Source: Blastocladiella emersonii ATCC 22665 (lineage: Eukaryota > Fungi > Blastocladiomycota). Taken from it: DNA of 64,000 nucleotides. Where the stretch lies: the NCBI GenBank assembly GCA_025594325.1, contig JANHCV010000004.1, forward strand, positions 1,240,001 to 1,304,000, read 5' to 3'. Below are positions 17,649-25,700 of the stretch, one piece after another. The notes under the pieces were generated by a model, which worked only from the letters and a program-made list of their open reading frames with translations, was not told the DNA's origin and searched no databases. Position 1 is the stretch's first letter. Every line of letters starts with the position of its first letter. Made by a program: the position numbers and the translations under genes.

Positions 17649-18714
17649 TCTGTTTGTTCCCCCCGACATCAACTCATTCCCGCCGGCCTACGCCACCCTT
17701 ACCCGATCGACTCGGCCTCGGGTTCAGGCTCAAGGGGCGGGAGGCAGCGTAGAGTGCGCGTGGGAGGCACAGACAGGCAGGTTGCGCCTCAGGGCAGTTG
17801 GGCGCGCCCGGTGGCCAGCCCCCCTCGCCTTCGCTGCACCCTCTGTTCCGTTCCGACCTTCTCCATCTCTCGATCCCTGAAGCCCTCGTACATGCTGCAG
17901 CGCCCGCGGCTTGCGTGGAGTTCCCATGCCCGCTGCATTCTGCCCGCCTCGTGGCTCGCCCCGCGCTCGCGCGTCGATCCTCATCCTCGACATCAAAGGG
18001 CACTCGCGTGCGAGCCTCCGCGAGCTTGACCGTGAGTCGACTTCGACGAGAAGCAAGGGAGGACGCAGCGGCCTTCTATCCGTGGCCCGCAACGGCTCTC
18101 AGCAGCGGCCGCCGTTGCTATCGTCGTCGTGACGGACAAGGGCCGTGGCCGTGGCCGCGGCCACGGTTCGTTTGCTTGCAAATCGCTCACGCGGGAGACG
18201 CTCCGGCCGGCCGGTGCGCTGTGCTGCGGTCCGCTGCGGTTGATCCACTGGCGGGCGTGTTGCGCCTCTCCGCTGCGCGGCCGCGTAGAGTGGCGCAGCG
18301 CGTTGCCACGCCCTCGCTCGCGCCCGACCGCAAATCAGGGGTTCAATCAAGTCGCGAGTCCCCGGGGACGCTGATTTGGATCGATGGTGAGAGAAAGCAC
18401 ACAAGTCCCTCAAGCGACCAGCGAAAGAAATGCGTCGGCAGCTCGTCGTGAAGGAGGTCACGACCACCGAGCGGTGTCCAAAGTGGAGTTCATGGGCAGG
18501 AGGCAACCAGGACCAGTACCTTCGTGCCCCGGACGCGTTGCATGGGGTTATGCTGCTGTGCATGGTCGAGGAGATGAGAAGGGGGAGCAGACGCGGAGTG
18601 GGATCTGTGCCACGGTCAGCTGATGCAGCGCTTCGGCCAAAATGTAGGGTGAGTTTCCGATCCCTCCTCCCCCGAGATCAACGAAGCTAGATGCAGCGCC
18701 CATGCTAGAAACCA

Positions 18715-21700
18715 ATGGAACCTGATGCAATGAGTTATGCCTTAATGGATCCGGCGACGCCGCTTGTCCCGCCGACCGCGTCGTATATCTTGGACCGCGC
18801 CGTGCCGACCGCCGATCGCGACGCCTTGGCCCGCCGTGTTCGAGAGCGCAAGCTTCCCGGCAATGCCGCTTTCAACAGCTGGGTCCGAGGCCGCGACGCC
18901 GTTATGCGCCGGCTTGCGGCCGAGGCGGAGCTTGCTGTCCAACGTGGCGATTTGGAGGCCGCCGCGCGTCTTGCTACGGATCGCGCCAATGTTCAAGCTG
19001 AGATCGACGTGTGGACTGCCGTTCGTGAGGAGCTTTGCGTACGTTATTGGCCCTTTCTGTGCTCCATTCTCGCCAAACCTCACCGACCGATGAGTTACAC
19101 TATAGACATCCAATCGGCCTCGTGAGCCTGCTTCTGCTCCCATCTCGTTTGACCTCAAGGGTCCGGCTTTTACACCGCCTGCTGACGCCATCGTCGACAC
19201 GCCGGAGCTGCTCGGTCAGTGGGAAACCATGAAGCCGCGAAACTTGCCTAACCTGGGTCCCGTCCCCGCCGACGCCCTCGACCCGGAGGGCTTGCAGCCG
19301 CGCGATGTCACGCTCCCCGACGCCGACGCGTTGCGCTACTGCGCCGACCTGACCCTCGCCGTGCGCACCTTCTCGCCCGACGAGTTCTTCGCCGAACAGA
19401 TTTCGATGCTTCTCCCCATCGGCGACGGAAGCGACGAGTTCGAGGAGCTGGTATTCACCCACGACGAGGTCATGGTTGTCCTTGGCGATGCCTGTCGCTT
19501 CAACGACAAGCTTCTCGCTAACGCCGTCAAGCTGCTCGACATTTGCGCGGAGATTTCCCTGCGCGAACGAGTCGACTTTGACGTGTCGCCCGAGATCGTC
19601 GAGACTATGCTCGCGTGTCTCACCGACGACGACTACATCGACGGCCGCATCGCGGTCTCGTGCGAAGATTTTTCTCAACTCGACGGAGCTGTCAAGACCT
19701 ACTATGCCAAGTACGGTTCCGATGGCTGTCTGCCGCTCCCGACGGGCTACTCGCGCACTCTCCGCGACCTCGCTTACATCTTTCTGGCCAATATCCTCCG
19801 CAGCCTCTTCCAACACGTCAAGAACCAAATGTCGCATGTACTTATCGCCATTTACACGCGGTTTCTGGAAGCGGTCGCGGCTGAACCCGCCTACCAGCGG
19901 TCGAGTTTGCCGCTGGAGCCGTTGGCCTTGCAACGAGCAATCACGCATCTCCGCTACCTTACTGCCGATCATCCCCGGCTCTTCCCTCCTTCCCAGGGGC
20001 GCGCGTGGCTCCGGTGCCGCGGCTTATGGGATACGAATGACGCTCTGGGCGACAGCGACGCAGCGGTCGCGCCTTTGTGCAACGTCAGCAGCGCCATGAC
20101 GCTCGAGGAATCCATCATGGTCAACGCGCTCGACCTCGATCCTGATGACCAGCGTCTTTTTGAGCTCCGCCCGCTCATCACGTTGCTTGACCGTCTTCGC
20201 GATGCTTCCAAGTGGCTCGTTTCGGAGCGATGGGTCGAGCCGGACTTTACTGTGCCCACTTCGTTCGCCGACTTCTTCCCCAAGTCTACGCACCACGGCT
20301 TTACGGTAGCCGCCGTCTATGAGCTGCTTTCCGGGACCGCTGCTCCAGACGAAACCGCCCCTCCTCACCCGATCCCGCTCACCGATGCCACTCAACAAAA
20401 GTTCGACACGGGCATCGCTCCGCCGAAGGTTTACCAAAAGGTCGCCGCCCGACTCGCCCGTCGCGCGACCGCGGCCAAGGCGCAATGGGACGAAATCTTT
20501 CTTGATGCCGAGGGGATCGTGTCGCCTTCCGTTTTGTGGAAGTGGGACGGCAGTCATCTCCACAACCACTTTTACGGCTACTTTGCGACTGATGGGAGCA
20601 GTATCCATGCGCTTTTTGTCGAGGCCGGGATGCGGCCCCACGGCCCCGCTCGCGACGACGCCAAACTTGCTCGCGTCGTCAGCGATTGGGTCGGCGCGGC
20701 AGACTCGGACGGCTACGCGGGTCGTCTTGCCGCAATTGGCGGCCATCTTCCAGCCGTCTCGCAGCCGCGCTTCCGCGGCAAGGGCTTCCAGGACCCCGAC
20801 TCGCGCGACGTGCACGCCGGCCGTATCCTTCTGCCCGCCAACTGGAACGTCGTGGTGATGCTACCAGGCCACACCCAGCTCACGGCGCGCGTCGTGTCGG
20901 CCGGGCTCATCGCTGAGCTGCAGCGACTCGTGCGCGCGTATCGCAGCGACCTGCCCGCGCGCGTGCATCACACCTACGATATCAGCAACGACTTTGAAGT
21001 CTCGCTTAACCGGCTGAGCAAGGTTGCTCGGGACGCCGCAGCGCTTATCAACGCGCACGGCGTGCTTGCTGCGAAGCTCGGCGGCGCGCAGGCCGGGTTC
21101 GACTTTGTCATGGGCAAGGTCCGCGCGCATGTCGAGCAGGCGCGCGCCAAGGCGACGGCCGACTTCAAGGACCAGTTCATTGCGCGCGAACTCGAGCACA
21201 CGCTGATCAACGCGCTTGCGATTGCGGCGGGCTCGCCGGCCACGGTGAATATCGCTTTTCCCGCTGGATTTGCGCCGCTTCACGACGTCATTGCCTTGGC
21301 CGATGCAGCTCGGGCCGCGGGCACGCCTTTGAAACTGGAGCTCTCATACGACGATCGCCTTGACGACGCCGACGACAACGACGATCCGTTCGTCGAGCTG
21401 ACCCCCGCGGCTGCGGGCGCCCTCATTGCTCGCAAGGCGATCAGCTGCGTGGTCGTATCGAACATGCATTTTGCGCAGCGCAAGACGCATCGAGCTGCCG
21501 ACGACCTGCTCGCCAAGTTCACGGGCGACGCGGCCGCGGTCGCGGAGCTCGAGCGGTGGCTTCGTCTTCTCGCGCTGCAGCACGTGACGACGGGCGCGCA
21601 CAGCCTCGCGCAGCACCCGATCAACGCGTTCTATGACCCGACGACGCTCGTCAACAAGCCCGCCGCGCTCGCGCAGCTCACGGACGCGTGCCGCGGCGCT

Positions 21701-22033
21701 GTGGTCCTCATGGGCGATCGGGAGCAGTTTGCGGGCTCTCGCGTGCACGCGGTCGCCAAGGGCGTCACGGCGCACCTGCGCGCCGGCGGCGTGCACACGC
21801 ACCTCGTCAACGAGGAGTACGCGGCCAGGTGGTGCGCGGTCTGCGTTGCGCTCAACCCGACGGCCGCGCCCAAGGGCGAATGCGACCTCGTCGTGTTGCC
21901 TGATCGCGACACTGTGCGGTGCCCGAGGTGCCATCTCGACGTCGGCCGCGACGTGAACGTGGTGCTCAACCTCCTCATGTCCTCGCTGGACCAGTTTGTG
22001 ATCGTTCCCGCGCAGCCCGAGTTTGCGCTGTAG
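18715..22033 (+). CDS. Fanzor1/TnpB-family RNA-guided nuclease homolog, two exons (18715-19038, 19106-22033), about 1083 aa, RuvC-I apparently degenerate
   Basis: The 934-aa ORF contains HFYGYFATDGSSIHALF (WED), NVVVMLPGHTQLTARV (RuvC-I-like), AVVLMGD, LVNEEYAARWCAVC, RCPRC and GRDVNVVLNLL. Intron 19039-19105 (GTACGT..CTCAC..TAG) joins the 18715 ORF in frame through 41 stop-free codons to ATG 19229. Confidence 0.85.
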
Positions 22034-22104
22034 CGGGCCTTGCTCCGGTTTTCGTTTGCTCATACATGGACGTTTTGTTCTTCTCGAATTCGCTTTTTGC
22101 TCGA

Positions 22105-22190
22105 GCGTGCGTCCTACGCGAGGGACGAGCCGCGAGACGCGTTGCGCCACACCGCGCGCGCGGCTTCGCACAATCACTCAATATTGTTCA
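22105..22190 (+). ncRNA. Candidate omega-RNA (scaffold plus guide) of the Fanzor-like gene
   Basis: Hairpin CGTCC/GGACG (22110-22127) and stem AGCCGCG/CGCGGCT (22128-22165), followed by CGCAC (22167-22171), which can pair with GTGCG (22107-22111) or TGCG (22143-22146). An abrupt switch to AT-rich sequence follows. It starts about 70 nt after the stop codon. Confidence 0.5.
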
Positions 22191-22755
22191 CTTTTCATTG
22201 AAAGTCATGAACGTCGCCGAATTCGCTGAGCTTGGTAAGGATGGGCTCTGCTCGTCAATAGCGATCCAAGGCCACGAGGGGCTCGTATGTTGGACCTGCG
22301 GTACCAAATGCACGCCGCGGTGATGCTAGCGATGATCGTCCGCGTCCTCGTTTGTAAGCATGAATTGCCTTGGCACTTAACAATTTCCTTATAATGCTGA
22401 TGTTTTTTTAGAGCCCCCTAAGGTCCACGAGAGAAAGCTTTGGATACGGTTGATGAGGGGTTGGTTGAGGATTCGGCCGACGAGGATGAGCTTGACGCTC
22501 CACGCCAGATCAACCTGCGACGGACCACCACCACTGAACGCGGCTCAGTGCGACATGAGTGAGGGCAAGCTGCTTGGCAGTCGCGGCCACGGCCACGCGT
22601 TCTTCATACGCGGCCCGCAGGTCGGCGAGTTGCAGGTGGATATCCGCTCCGCACTCAAACAGAAGTTCCCAAGACTTGAGTTGGTCTCGCTGAAATCAGA
22701 CGTGGCGCCGCTGATTTGCGGCACGGGCACGCGGAACGCTGTCAATCTTGCTCGT

Positions 22756-22833
22756 GGCCGCCGTCAAGGCGATGGCCATGGCCACGACCACGACCATGGC
22801 CGCCGTCAAGGCGATGGCCATGGCCACGACCAT
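22756..22833 (+). repeat. Imperfect tandem duplication (42 + 36 nt) built from GGCCAT/GACCAC-type hexamers
   Basis: GGCCGCCGTCAAGGCGATGGCCATGGCCACGACCA occurs twice, adjacent. Confidence 0.9.
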
Positions 22834-23235
22834 GGTCGTAGCCAAGCACATGGTCGGTTGCAACCACGCACTCTGATGCTGTTCTCAGCTATAAAACAAC
22901 TTAACTGCTGAGGCAAAATTTAGGAACAACTGAAACACAATTCAACGACGACCTTTCGGTGGATTATCGCAGTAGATGGCGACAATGATCGATGACCATT
23001 GCCAACCGGTTTGAGGAGCTCGCTCAAGCGGACCAGGTTTTGAGGCACAGGGAAAAATCAGATTATGCTGACAGGATGATTCGCTCGAAAACAGGAAGGT
23101 AGAAACGATGGGGAGCAAAACGATCAAACACTAACGAGGGGGAAACGGATATCTTGAGGCCAGCCGTTCTTGACGAGTTGCCGTGTCGCGCGTCGCCGTG
23201 TTGCGGCCAGCCGTTTCTCGCGCTCGACAATCGAC

Positions 23236-25700
23236 TTAGTGCGAGTGCGGGTGCAGGGCCTCCTTGGAGTCCATGTCGCCCGACATGTCGATCTGGTGCG
23301 AGTCCTTCTCGTCGCCGGGAACGAGCGCGCGCTGGTGGCGGAGACGACTGTGGCGGTAGCCGTAGCCGCCGTACACGACGAGGCCGAGGGCCATCCAGAT
23401 CGCGAGACGCAGAATGGTCTCGACACCGGTCGTGACGATCAGAGCGCCGGCCGAGAGCGCGCCGAGGCCGGGGATGATGATGGGGCCGAGCGGGACGCGG
23501 AACGGGCGCTCAAGGTCGGGACGCGTGAAGCGCAGCACGGAGACAGAGATGCACACCAGCATGAAGGCTAGAAGGGTGCCGGCAGAGCTAATTTTATCGA
23601 TATCTGCATGTTAGTAGGTGGTCGAAGGTATGAGGTGAAGTGAAGGGACACGTACGTGAGCTGTGATAAAGTCAAGTCCATGTCCGAGGTCCAAGGTCTA
23701 GGTTAGTCAAAGCCACGCGTTGCGCCGCAGCAGTCGAGCACGTACATCACCGAGGAGGTTGCTTTGTATGGGAGGAGGTCAAGTAGGGACAAGAGTGTTA
23801 GTTCATGTCGAGGTACCATGCGATGATCACGAGTGTCGAGACGTACAGCTACAGGTCCCGATGAAGGTCACGATCAGTCCGCGTCAACGACGATGACGGT
23901 ACACGATGGTCACGTACAGGCAGGAAACCGGCAGCGACGACACAGAAGGTGCCCGAGACGATGGTCGAGACCATGGGCGTGCCGAACTTGGGGTGGATGC
24001 GGCCGAACACGGGCGGGAGGAGGCCATCAGCAGCGAGACTGGCGAAGACACGGGGCTGCGCGAGCAGACTGACGAGGATGACCGACGTGAGACCAGCAAC
24101 GCCGCCAATACTGGACAGAGAACGAGTGTAAGCGAAGGCGGCCTCAGGCGACGAGTCACGGTGGCCACGTACGAGACGGCGATCTTGAGCCACGTCATGC
24201 CGAGGTCCTTGACGGCGTCAGCGAGCGGGGCCGACGTGCCAAGCAGCGTGTAGGGCTTGATGCCCGTCAGGCAGAGCGAGACCAGGATGCTACGAGGGTT
24301 GCGAAGGTGAGATTTGGATCAAGGTCTGGACGAGAGCATGAGAGTGCCGTACTAGAGGATGGTGCAGAAGACGAGACTGCCGATGATACCGAGAGGCATG
24401 TCGCGAGCAGGGTTCTTGACCTCTGTGGGTACGAAAACATGTCAGTGGCCAGGTTCGAGTTGATGGTCATGGCCATGGCCAAGGTCACGGCAACGACGTA
24501 CCCTGGGCGCAGGTCGAGACGGCGTCGAAACCGATGTAGGCGAAGAAGACCGAGACACATGCGCGGAGCACACCGGCGAAGCCGTACTTGCCGTCCTCGG
24601 TGCGCTCGGGGATGAAGGGCGACCAGTTCTCTAAATACACACACGCGGCCGCGGTGGTGAGATGTCGGTAGCGCGCGCTGCCCACGTAGATGACGTACCA
24701 GGCTTGACGTAGGACACGGTGCTGAAGAGGAAGAGCATAATCACGATGACCTGAAGACGAGGGAATCGAAGGTCAGGGAGGGAGCGGACGAGGGCCGAGC
24801 GGGTTTGCGCACCTTGACGAAAACCATGGCGTGGTTGAACATGGCCGAGTGGCGGACGCCGAGGCACAAGATCGTGGTGCAGAGCACGACGATGGCGATG
24901 GCGGGCAGGTTGATGATGCCGGTCGTCTCGTCCGAGTAGAAGCCGCGCTTGTCCGAGTACTCGACCGGGCCAACGGTCCAGCGAGTGCCAATATCGGCGC
25001 CGAGCGAGTTGAGGAACGAGACCAGGTACGCGCTCCAGCCGACGGCGACCGTCTACACGCGGTGGCGGAGGTGCGAGGTCAGGATCGGTGGTCGGTGGTC
25101 GGTGGTCGGTGGTCGATGGCCGGTCGCGCTTGGTCGCGGCCACCTCCCACAACCTCCAGAAGACCAAACGTACCGCTGCTCCCATGAGGTACTCGAGCAT
25201 TAAATCCCACCCAATCACCCAACTGCGACCGGGAAAAAGCGTCGGTTAACTACGCCTGGTCGTTGCGGGAGTCGGGGAGCGAAGAAACGTACGCGAGAAG
25301 CTCGCCCGTGGTCGCGTAGGCGTACGTGTAGGCCGAACCGGCCACCGGCACCAGCGCAGCCATCTCCGAGTAGCAGAGACCGGCGAAAGCGCAGGCGAGA
25401 CCCGAGAGGATGAAGGAAAGAACGATGGCCGGGCCGGCGTGGAGCGCGGCGGCCTTGCCCGTGATCACGAAAATGCCGGCGCCGATGATTTCGCCGATGC
25501 CTACACGCATGGAGCGGCCGGCGGCGAGTCAGAATATGCGCAAGAGTCGTCGATGGCCAAGGGAGTGAGGGGAGCATACCGATCATGGTCACGTCCTTGG
25601 CCGTGAGCGTGCGCTTCAGCTGCGAGTTGAGGGCCTCGCGCTGGTAGTCGGTGACCGACTTGACCATGAAGAGGCTTCGTAGGAAGCTTTGCGGCGCCAT
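23236..25700 (-). CDS. APC-superfamily amino acid permease (cationic amino acid transporter-like), many exons
   Basis: LKRTLTAKDVTMIG|IGEIIGAGIFVITG, AGPAIVLSF, CYSEMAALVPVAGSAYTYAY, FFAYIGFDAVST, QPRVFASLAADGLLP, RPFRVPLGP. Confidence 0.93.
25085..25119 (+). repeat. (TCGGTGG)n heptamer microsatellite in a permease intron
   Basis: Four perfect units plus one variant. Confidence 0.85.

Follow-up and report, generated by a model that had tools for sequence, protein, structure and literature searches.

The stretch of DNA that we analyzed, referred to below as the window, comprises 64,000 nucleotides (nt) of contig JANHCV010000004.1 from the fungus Blastocladiella emersonii ATCC 22665. On its forward strand, at 19229–22033, lies an open reading frame (ORF) of 934 codons plus a stop whose product resembles Fanzors, which are to our knowledge the only known eukaryotic RNA-guided DNA endonucleases. 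The ORF list, the GenBank match and a family alignment all place the gene H9P43_004178 here. GenBank labels its product (P0001) a hypothetical protein of 881 residues, and this protein is identical to the ORF translation except for a 53-residue in-frame stretch that the annotators spliced out as an intron. The original prediction for this locus described an unannotated Fanzor1 gene; since H9P43_004178 is already annotated as a hypothetical protein, "unannotated" is literally wrong, and it is therefore only the function that lacks annotation. The 934-codon ORF has coding periodicity, with GC contents of 0.69, 0.45 and 0.79 at the first, second and third codon positions (GC1, GC2 and GC3). DNA contigs that were independently assembled from three public sequencing runs of one sample contain the ORF stretch without differences, and this sample may be the source of the assembly itself.

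The motifs that the original prediction had recognized were located again by script, and all of them lie where it had put them on the forward strand: an N-terminal motif beginning LRDLAYIF at 19760, FFP at 20273, QWDEIF at 20483, FYGYFATDGSSIHALF at 20570 (with the T of TDG at 20588), MLPG at 20858, VVLMGD at 21701, NEEYAARWCAVC at 21809, CPRC at 21920 and RDVN at 21947 (with the D at 21950). An N-terminal helical domain (residues 90–345; 19496–20263) comes first and is followed by a WED-type conserved block, KAQWDEIF ... NHFYGYFATDGSSIHALF (20477–20617), which follows the family consensus K..WD, N.F.G...TDGY..R and is modeled with low confidence. Next is the RuvC-I β-hairpin (residues 533–557; 20825–20899), with strands at residues 540–546 and 551–557, a predicted local distance difference test (pLDDT) score of about 80 and Leu545 at the position of the catalytic Asp. 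A long, mostly helical insertion together with a bridge region (residues 575–800; 20951–21628) occupies extra alignment columns that are common to the closest paralogue only, and the model of this part is helical and of low confidence. The RuvC-II strand AVVLMGDRE (residues 824–832; 21698–21724; family consensus AVVLIG) holds the canonical Glu position. It is followed by Glu862 in the motif NEEY, the pair Ala865-Ala866 and a C4 zinc ribbon (C869/C872/C898/C901), which together form a TNB domain with a sub-gathering match to PF07282 (21809–21931), and by the RuvC-III motif RDVN (21947–21958), whose R907, D908 and N910 are invariant in the family. Outside the RuvC core, both of our AlphaFold models are poor, and we therefore assign the WED, REC and N-terminal parts from sequence motifs only.

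Searched exhaustively with phmmer, 1.84 billion representative proteins gave 13 matches, one of which is the gene's own annotated product, and all 10 of the matches that were looked up by name are from B. emersonii. A word-index search added two further B. emersonii paralogues and otherwise returned the gene itself or B. emersonii paralogues only. The paralogue count that the original prediction had proposed thus comes to at least 14 annotated paralogues in this genome, a private and very divergent Fanzor-like family that is invisible to ordinary searches. The Cas12f1-like TNB domain PF07282 is carried by 13 of 14 paralogues, with 12 shown above the Pfam gathering score. The homology of H9P43_004178 to the TNB-bearing paralogues is a direct observation, with expectation values (E) of 1e-105 to 2.5e-5, and those paralogues score 28.6–44.2 bits for PF07282. 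The closest of them, H9P43_004223 (P0002), is 43% identical (E 1e-105) and is found on the same contig at a distance of about 97 kb. The order of blocks is fixed in the family alignment: K..WD, N.F.G...TDGY..R, a strand ending in DPG, AVVLIG, VNExYSSKxCxxC, CPRC and RDxNAAxNI. Three of the zinc-ribbon cysteines are invariant in the family and the fourth, C872, nearly so, and H9P43_004178 keeps all four. As a separate observation on P0002, its frame (L001 5409–7685) runs open for 758 codons and, from 5700 onward, matches the H9P43_004178 protein in a single frame, and the introns of its GenBank model (622 residues across 2685 nt) may not be real.

A search of the Protein Data Bank (PDB) with the single H9P43_004178 protein returned nothing relevant, and NCBIfam and PHROGs gave no match. 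With a profile of the whole family, the top 17 PDB matches are all TnpB, TranC, Cas12f, Cas12m or Fanzor chains (E 1e-5 to 0.07), and in TnpB and TranC chains the RD.NAA.NI motif lines up with the RDrNAAlNI segment of the profile. When the zinc ribbon was left out of the family profile, the resulting sub-profile failed to reach SpuFz1, so upstream of the ribbon there is no residue-by-residue sequence alignment to a solved Fanzor1. Our two AlphaFold models have mean pLDDT scores of 48 and 53, rising to about 80 for residues 530–570 and 770–930. VIA-align superposes 145–167 residues spanning residues 525–925, that is, the split RuvC fold and the zinc ribbon, with Z scores of 9.0–10.2 to fungal Fanzor1 proteins (PpFz, SpuFz), 8.9–10.6 to CasPhi and Cas12b and 8.0–8.8 to ISDra2 TnpB. 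For a mimivirus Fanzor2 the Z score is 6.6–6.8. The fold of the RuvC core is thereby shown as well. The top 13 Foldseek matches are all Cas12, Fanzor or TnpB proteins, at an E of only about 0.02, and in a protein language model the neighboring clusters, which bear PF07282, come from giant viruses, Mucoromycota and green algae. From this transitive homology, the PDB family profile, the structure comparison and the language-model neighbors, we conclude that membership of H9P43_004178 in the TnpB/Fanzor superfamily is secure. Fanzor1 is the likely clade, with fungal Fanzor1 structurally closest in one of the two AlphaFold models.

Like the fungal Fanzor1 proteins SpuFz1 of Spizellomyces punctatus (PDB 8GKH) and PpFz of Parasitella parasitica (PDB 9CF0), H9P43_004178 is the gene of a eukaryotic fungal host, and its RuvC core and zinc ribbon superpose on theirs at 17–19% identity, the highest among the top-ranked matches. 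It shares with them the alternative RuvC-II Glu before the first CxxC and the RDxN motif of RuvC-III, whereas its RuvC-I Asp is replaced by Leu and its sequence similarity is too low for direct detection by HMMER. It is also much longer, at 934–1083 residues against about 640 for Fanzor1, and has an N-terminal extension of about 380 residues and a helical insertion of about 200. Its nearest paralogue is only 43% identical, whereas dozens of copies of SpuFz1 share about 82% identity (PMC10432273). Fanzor2 (ApmFz2 of Acanthamoeba polyphaga mimivirus, PDB 9B0L) and IS607-type TnpB have the same superfamily fold and the rearranged Glu, but the structural score to Fanzor2 is lower and the family profile matches it over the zinc ribbon only (E 0.02). 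ISDra2 TnpB (PDB 8H1J and 8EXA) has the RuvC and TNB core in common, and the family profile matches it with an E of about 1e-4 on ...C..C....RD.NAALNI. That protein is prokaryotic, borne by IS200/605, about 400 residues long and has the canonical RuvC-II Glu, whereas the B. emersonii family has the alternative one. Early-diverging fungi, among them the blastoclad Allomyces, have been known to carry Fanzors since 2013 (PMC3627910), so a Fanzor gene in Blastocladiella is expected rather than surprising, and our literature search found no paper that names Fanzor or TnpB together with Blastocladiella. We regard H9P43_004178 as an atypical new Fanzor-like member of an already known family.

At the catalytic site it stands apart from its paralogues. 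In Fanzors, the canonical RuvC-II Glu is lost and an alternative conserved Glu lies downstream, before the zinc finger, and mutation of either the RuvC-I Asp or this alternative Glu abolishes cleavage, the RuvC-I D-to-A change leaving the ribonucleoprotein stable (PMC10530073). The catalytic residues of SpuFz1 are D383, E541 and D606 (PMC10432273). In our family alignment, all 10 paralogues that cover the RuvC-I region have the Asp, and H9P43_004178 alone has Leu545. Its strand reads VVVMLPG, against IIGDPG in P0002 and xxDPG or a variant of it in the paralogues. The codon is CTA (20861–20863) against GAC in P0002, with all three nucleotides different, and the D-to-L substitution is thus read directly from the DNA. 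The alternative RuvC-II Glu (E862, 33 residues after G829) and the RuvC-III Asp (D908) are invariant in the B. emersonii family and are kept here, while the family consensus AVVLIG(H/R)x contains no conserved Glu. The Asp-Glu-Asp triad is therefore incomplete, reading Leu545, Glu862 and Asp908. The original prediction had seen a RuvC-I-like strand followed by xPG, and the strand and the PG are real, but Leu stands at the catalytic position. The Glu that it had noticed right ahead of the zinc finger is the alternative RuvC-II Glu described for Fanzors, which is invariant in the family. Likewise, its assignment to the TnpB/Fanzor superfamily is borne out by paralogue homology, by the profile search, where the single sequence falls below threshold and the family profile finds TnpB, Cas12f, TranC and Fanzor chains, and by the superposition of the confident RuvC core on SpuFz1, but an active nuclease is unlikely, given Leu545 and the Ala-Ala pair, and the RNA guidance that the original prediction proposed is conjectural.

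The Fanzor/TnpB signature of Bao and Jurka, D-X(125,275)-[TS]-[TS]-X-X-[C4 zinc finger]-X(5,50)-RD (PMC3627910), tells the same story. H9P43_004178 fails two of its four elements, as the D is missing and the [TS][TS] pair is Ala-Ala. The distance from the RuvC-I position to this pair is 320 residues, against a signature range of 125–275. The C4 finger is present and RD lies five residues after its last Cys, and most of the paralogues that cover the motif satisfy the signature. Because the RuvC-I Asp and the [TS][TS] pair are both lost, H9P43_004178 is unlikely, as judged from its residues, to be a working nuclease.

The catalytic aspartate is lost, yet the frame has long been open. We compared H9P43_004178 with P0002 by the NG86 method and obtained an overall ratio of nonsynonymous to synonymous substitution rates (dN/dS) of 0.68 at a dS of 0.84, with 0.41 in the WED block; these pairwise ratios are compromised by the strong GC3 bias and the high divergence. 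The control pair of paralogues P0004 and P0015 gives 0.36. A relative-rate count found 10 losses here against 6 in P0002, which is not a significant excess (p 0.45). In a GC-biased neutral simulation of 934-codon ORFs, 8% were still open after 0.05 substitutions per site and under 1% after 0.1. Since few neutral ORFs remain open at 0.05–0.1 substitutions per site, selection must have acted on the frame over most of the period that followed its split from P0002. Moreover, a brief neutral phase at the end is unlikely to have sufficed for one codon to change at three nucleotides. We propose, with moderate confidence, that the protein outlasted the loss of the aspartate.

Taking these results together, we favor as fairly probable the reading that H9P43_004178 is a divergent Fanzor-type protein that is nuclease-dead and has probably been retained by selection. 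It would belong to a group of TnpB homologues of the Fanzor type, most likely Fanzor1, that has expanded specifically in B. emersonii. It keeps the split RuvC fold with the alternative RuvC-II Glu, the WED-like block, the RDxN motif of RuvC-III and the C4 zinc ribbon, while its RuvC-I Asp has changed to Leu and it carries a long extension at the N terminus as well as a long helical insertion. The likeliest state is then a protein that no longer cuts DNA, and selection probably kept it after the loss of the aspartate, its frame being open far longer than neutral drift would permit.

Several observations count against this reading. The protein's own PF07282 match is below threshold (20.3–23 bits against a cut-off of 26.3; E 6e-4 to 9e-5). 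The pLDDT is under 50 for most of the model, including the WED block, the N-terminal domain and the insertion, and the structure ranking did not separate Fanzor1 from Cas12 types, with CasPhi at the top for the second model. The SS pair conserved before the zinc finger has become AA, and NAA has become NVV. Relative to P0002, dN/dS is 0.93 in the insertion and 0.92 in the C-terminal part of RuvC, and values of about 0.9 fit relaxed constraint or decay. The phmmer search found no orthologue outside B. emersonii. Searches of public sequencing runs listed no RNA run. The search for an ω-RNA gave no Rfam match and a minimum free energy that did not improve on shuffles (z 0.93 and −0.33).

Some of these points would also be expected if H9P43_004178 were a young relic, that is, a Fanzor copy that was inactivated fairly recently and is decaying without a function, its frame still open because little time has passed and stops are rare in GC-rich DNA. 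The high dN/dS in the RuvC C-terminal part and the insertion fits such decay, and residues conserved in the family have been lost (D545L, S866A, A911V, G835A). The GC3 of 0.79 is also below the 0.88–0.90 of the paralogues and below that of most neighbors, and the sub-threshold Pfam score points the same way. We nevertheless find this account unlikely, while granting it some weight, because the 934-codon frame is intact at divergences at which the simulation closes nearly all neutral frames. The D-to-L change needs at least two nucleotide changes, and three are seen in the codon, which is hard to fit into so short a neutral phase. The WED dN/dS of 0.41 and the lack of a significant rate acceleration over P0002 likewise speak against decay.

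The protein could alternatively be an active RNA-guided nuclease with a rewired site, in which Asp830 and Glu832, acidic residues beside the canonical RuvC-II position, together with Glu862 and Asp908 would take the place of the RuvC-I Asp. The end of the RuvC-II strand reads G-D-R-E here and G-S-E in P0002, and most paralogues have no acidic residue there. HMMER sets this strand opposite the ISDra2 TnpB segment ...EIIGT, which ends just before the TnpB RuvC-II Glu, and rearrangement of the Fanzor catalytic site has a precedent (PMC10530073). In the case tested, however, changing the RuvC-I Asp to Ala abolished Fanzor cleavage (PMC10530073), and our literature search found no example in which the RuvC-I Asp is replaced from another strand. 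We consider such a site, which we suggest from residue positions, to be quite improbable. That H9P43_004178 might have no relation to TnpB or Fanzor, its motifs being a chance constellation in a lineage-specific zinc-ribbon protein, is effectively refuted, because the sub-gathering Pfam match, the empty single-sequence PDB search and the weak Foldseek E stand against E values of 1e-105 to 1e-9 to paralogues with significant TNB domains, a motif order conserved across the family, 17 top PDB profile matches that are all superfamily members and VIA-align Z scores of 9–10.6 over about 150 residues from RuvC-I to RuvC-III.

For a nuclease-dead, retained Fanzor-type protein, a known parallel is bacterial TldR, a group of nuclease-dead TnpB-derived RNA-guided transcription factors (10.1101/2023.11.30.569447). 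Like TldR, H9P43_004178 has a TnpB-family scaffold that has lost a RuvC catalytic residue and lies among host genes without a transposase. It differs in its eukaryotic host and in keeping the RuvC-II and RuvC-III residues and the zinc ribbon. We draw the likeness as an analogy for possible function and make no claim of membership. By this analogy, the protein could be an RNA- and/or DNA-binding protein, and RNA-guided binding may be retained. The bolder suggestion is that it is a eukaryotic counterpart of TldR, a Fanzor that lost its RuvC-I aspartate, acquired the N-terminal domain and the helical insertion, and is retained by the host for binding DNA, under RNA guidance or simply by sequence, perhaps in a regulatory role. 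This suggestion is tentative and in our view rather doubtful. Our literature search for nuclease-dead homologues adopted by a host found only bacterial TnpB/Cas12f cases (TldR and related proteins). Should H9P43_004178 turn out to be expressed and to bind RNA or DNA, it would exemplify in nature the co-option of a nuclease-dead Fanzor by a eukaryotic host.

Downstream of the gene lies a conserved non-coding element of 27 nt, CCGCGAGACGCGTTGCGCCACACC (22127–22153, forward strand), at +94 to +120 after the stop codon. The element, which over its copies spans 27–30 nt as CCGCGAGAC(ATCGAC)GCGTTGCGCCACAC, also occurs twice downstream of the P0002 stop (L001 7783–7812 and 7949–7979), 166 nt apart, and the similarity between the flanks of the two genes stops sharply after CCACAC. 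Other contigs of the genome share just about 20 nt of the element, looser copies of it are over-represented in the window, and it is absent from the flanks of the four other paralogues that were checked. On the TldR-like reading, the guide-RNA scaffold would end at this element, and an ω-RNA at the 3′ end of the gene is put forward here as a hypothesis. In the younger P0004/P0015 pair, similarity extends 109 nt beyond the stop codon that the two genes share and then abruptly breaks off, pointing to a duplicated unit that includes a 3′ non-coding tail; an end about 110 nt past the stop is as expected if the 3′ non-coding part belongs to the element. An inverted near-copy of the downstream motif at 18288–18304 was discarded, being marginal (top 1% of window controls) and having no counterpart upstream of P0002.

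We found no transposase among the neighboring genes and no IS607-type serine recombinase nearby. Around the gene there are no convincing terminal repeats and no 30-nt inverted repeats like those of Spu-1, and H9P43_004178 has no close copies, the P0002 gene being its nearest relative. A perfect inverted pair of 16 nt, CGTGGCCGTGGCCGCG, at 18144–18159 and 22582–22597 was considered as a terminal repeat. It is a low-complexity word of the (GGCCRY)n type with 9 near-matches in the window, and we therefore rejected it as evidence of a transposon and take it to be probably chance.

The gene model of H9P43_004178 can be refined in two places. The in-frame stretch of 159 nt that GenBank treats as an intron (19838–19996, forward strand; residues 204–256) appears as a gap in the alignment to P0001. 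Its 53 residues align as protein to both repeats of P0003, so the stretch is probably coding and the intron call probably wrong. Upstream of the ORF, a putative coding exon of 108 codons (18715–19038, forward strand) is open in frame from an ATG and joins the ORF in frame once a putative 67-nt GT..AG intron (19039–19105, forward strand; GTACGT...CTATAG) is removed; this intron has 49% GC against 61–64% in its flanks. The spliced model of 1083 residues, with exon 18715–19038, intron 19039–19105 and coding sequence from 19106 onward, is possible and weakly supported. The codon periodicity of the upstream exon is weak (GC1, GC2 and GC3 of 0.74, 0.53 and 0.66, so that GC3 is not the highest), and the exon has no counterpart at the paralogue locus.

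The protein P0003 (H9P43_008122; L006 5001–7077; 649 residues), to which the N-terminal domain of H9P43_004178 is homologous, consists of two tandem copies of this domain (BLASTP E 2e-13 and 5e-9), each of which terminates in a WL..ERWV.P..T.P motif. No RuvC part was found at its locus. In the AlphaFold model of H9P43_004178, the domain is helical and of low confidence. A protein-language-model likeness of the domain to TnpB N-terminal families (Aq_aa04 and MJ0013) was too weak, at a score of 0.90 and about 100 shared features, and was not used.

H9P43_004178 has two genes for zinc-finger transcription factors on one side and an amino-acid permease gene and a cation-efflux gene on the other. 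The window is GC-rich, at 56–76% per kb, and GC falls to 56–64% over 19001–24000, which covers the gene and the following intergenic region, against 68–73% in most flanking kilobases. Among the paralogues, P0004 (L002 4068–5898) and P0015 (L003 4855–7057) are 88% identical in DNA. A 70-nt direct repeat (89% identical) lies on either side of the P0015 gene, at about L003 3354–3423 and 7123–7191, and a second, partial Fanzor-like copy just downstream (L003 7313–7943), which is 69% identical to part of the P0004 gene, looks like a relic. In P0014 (H9P43_001163; 866 residues), an Abhydrolase_3 α/β-hydrolase domain (E 1e-28) precedes the Fanzor-like part, which reflects either a fusion of genes or the merging of two gene models.

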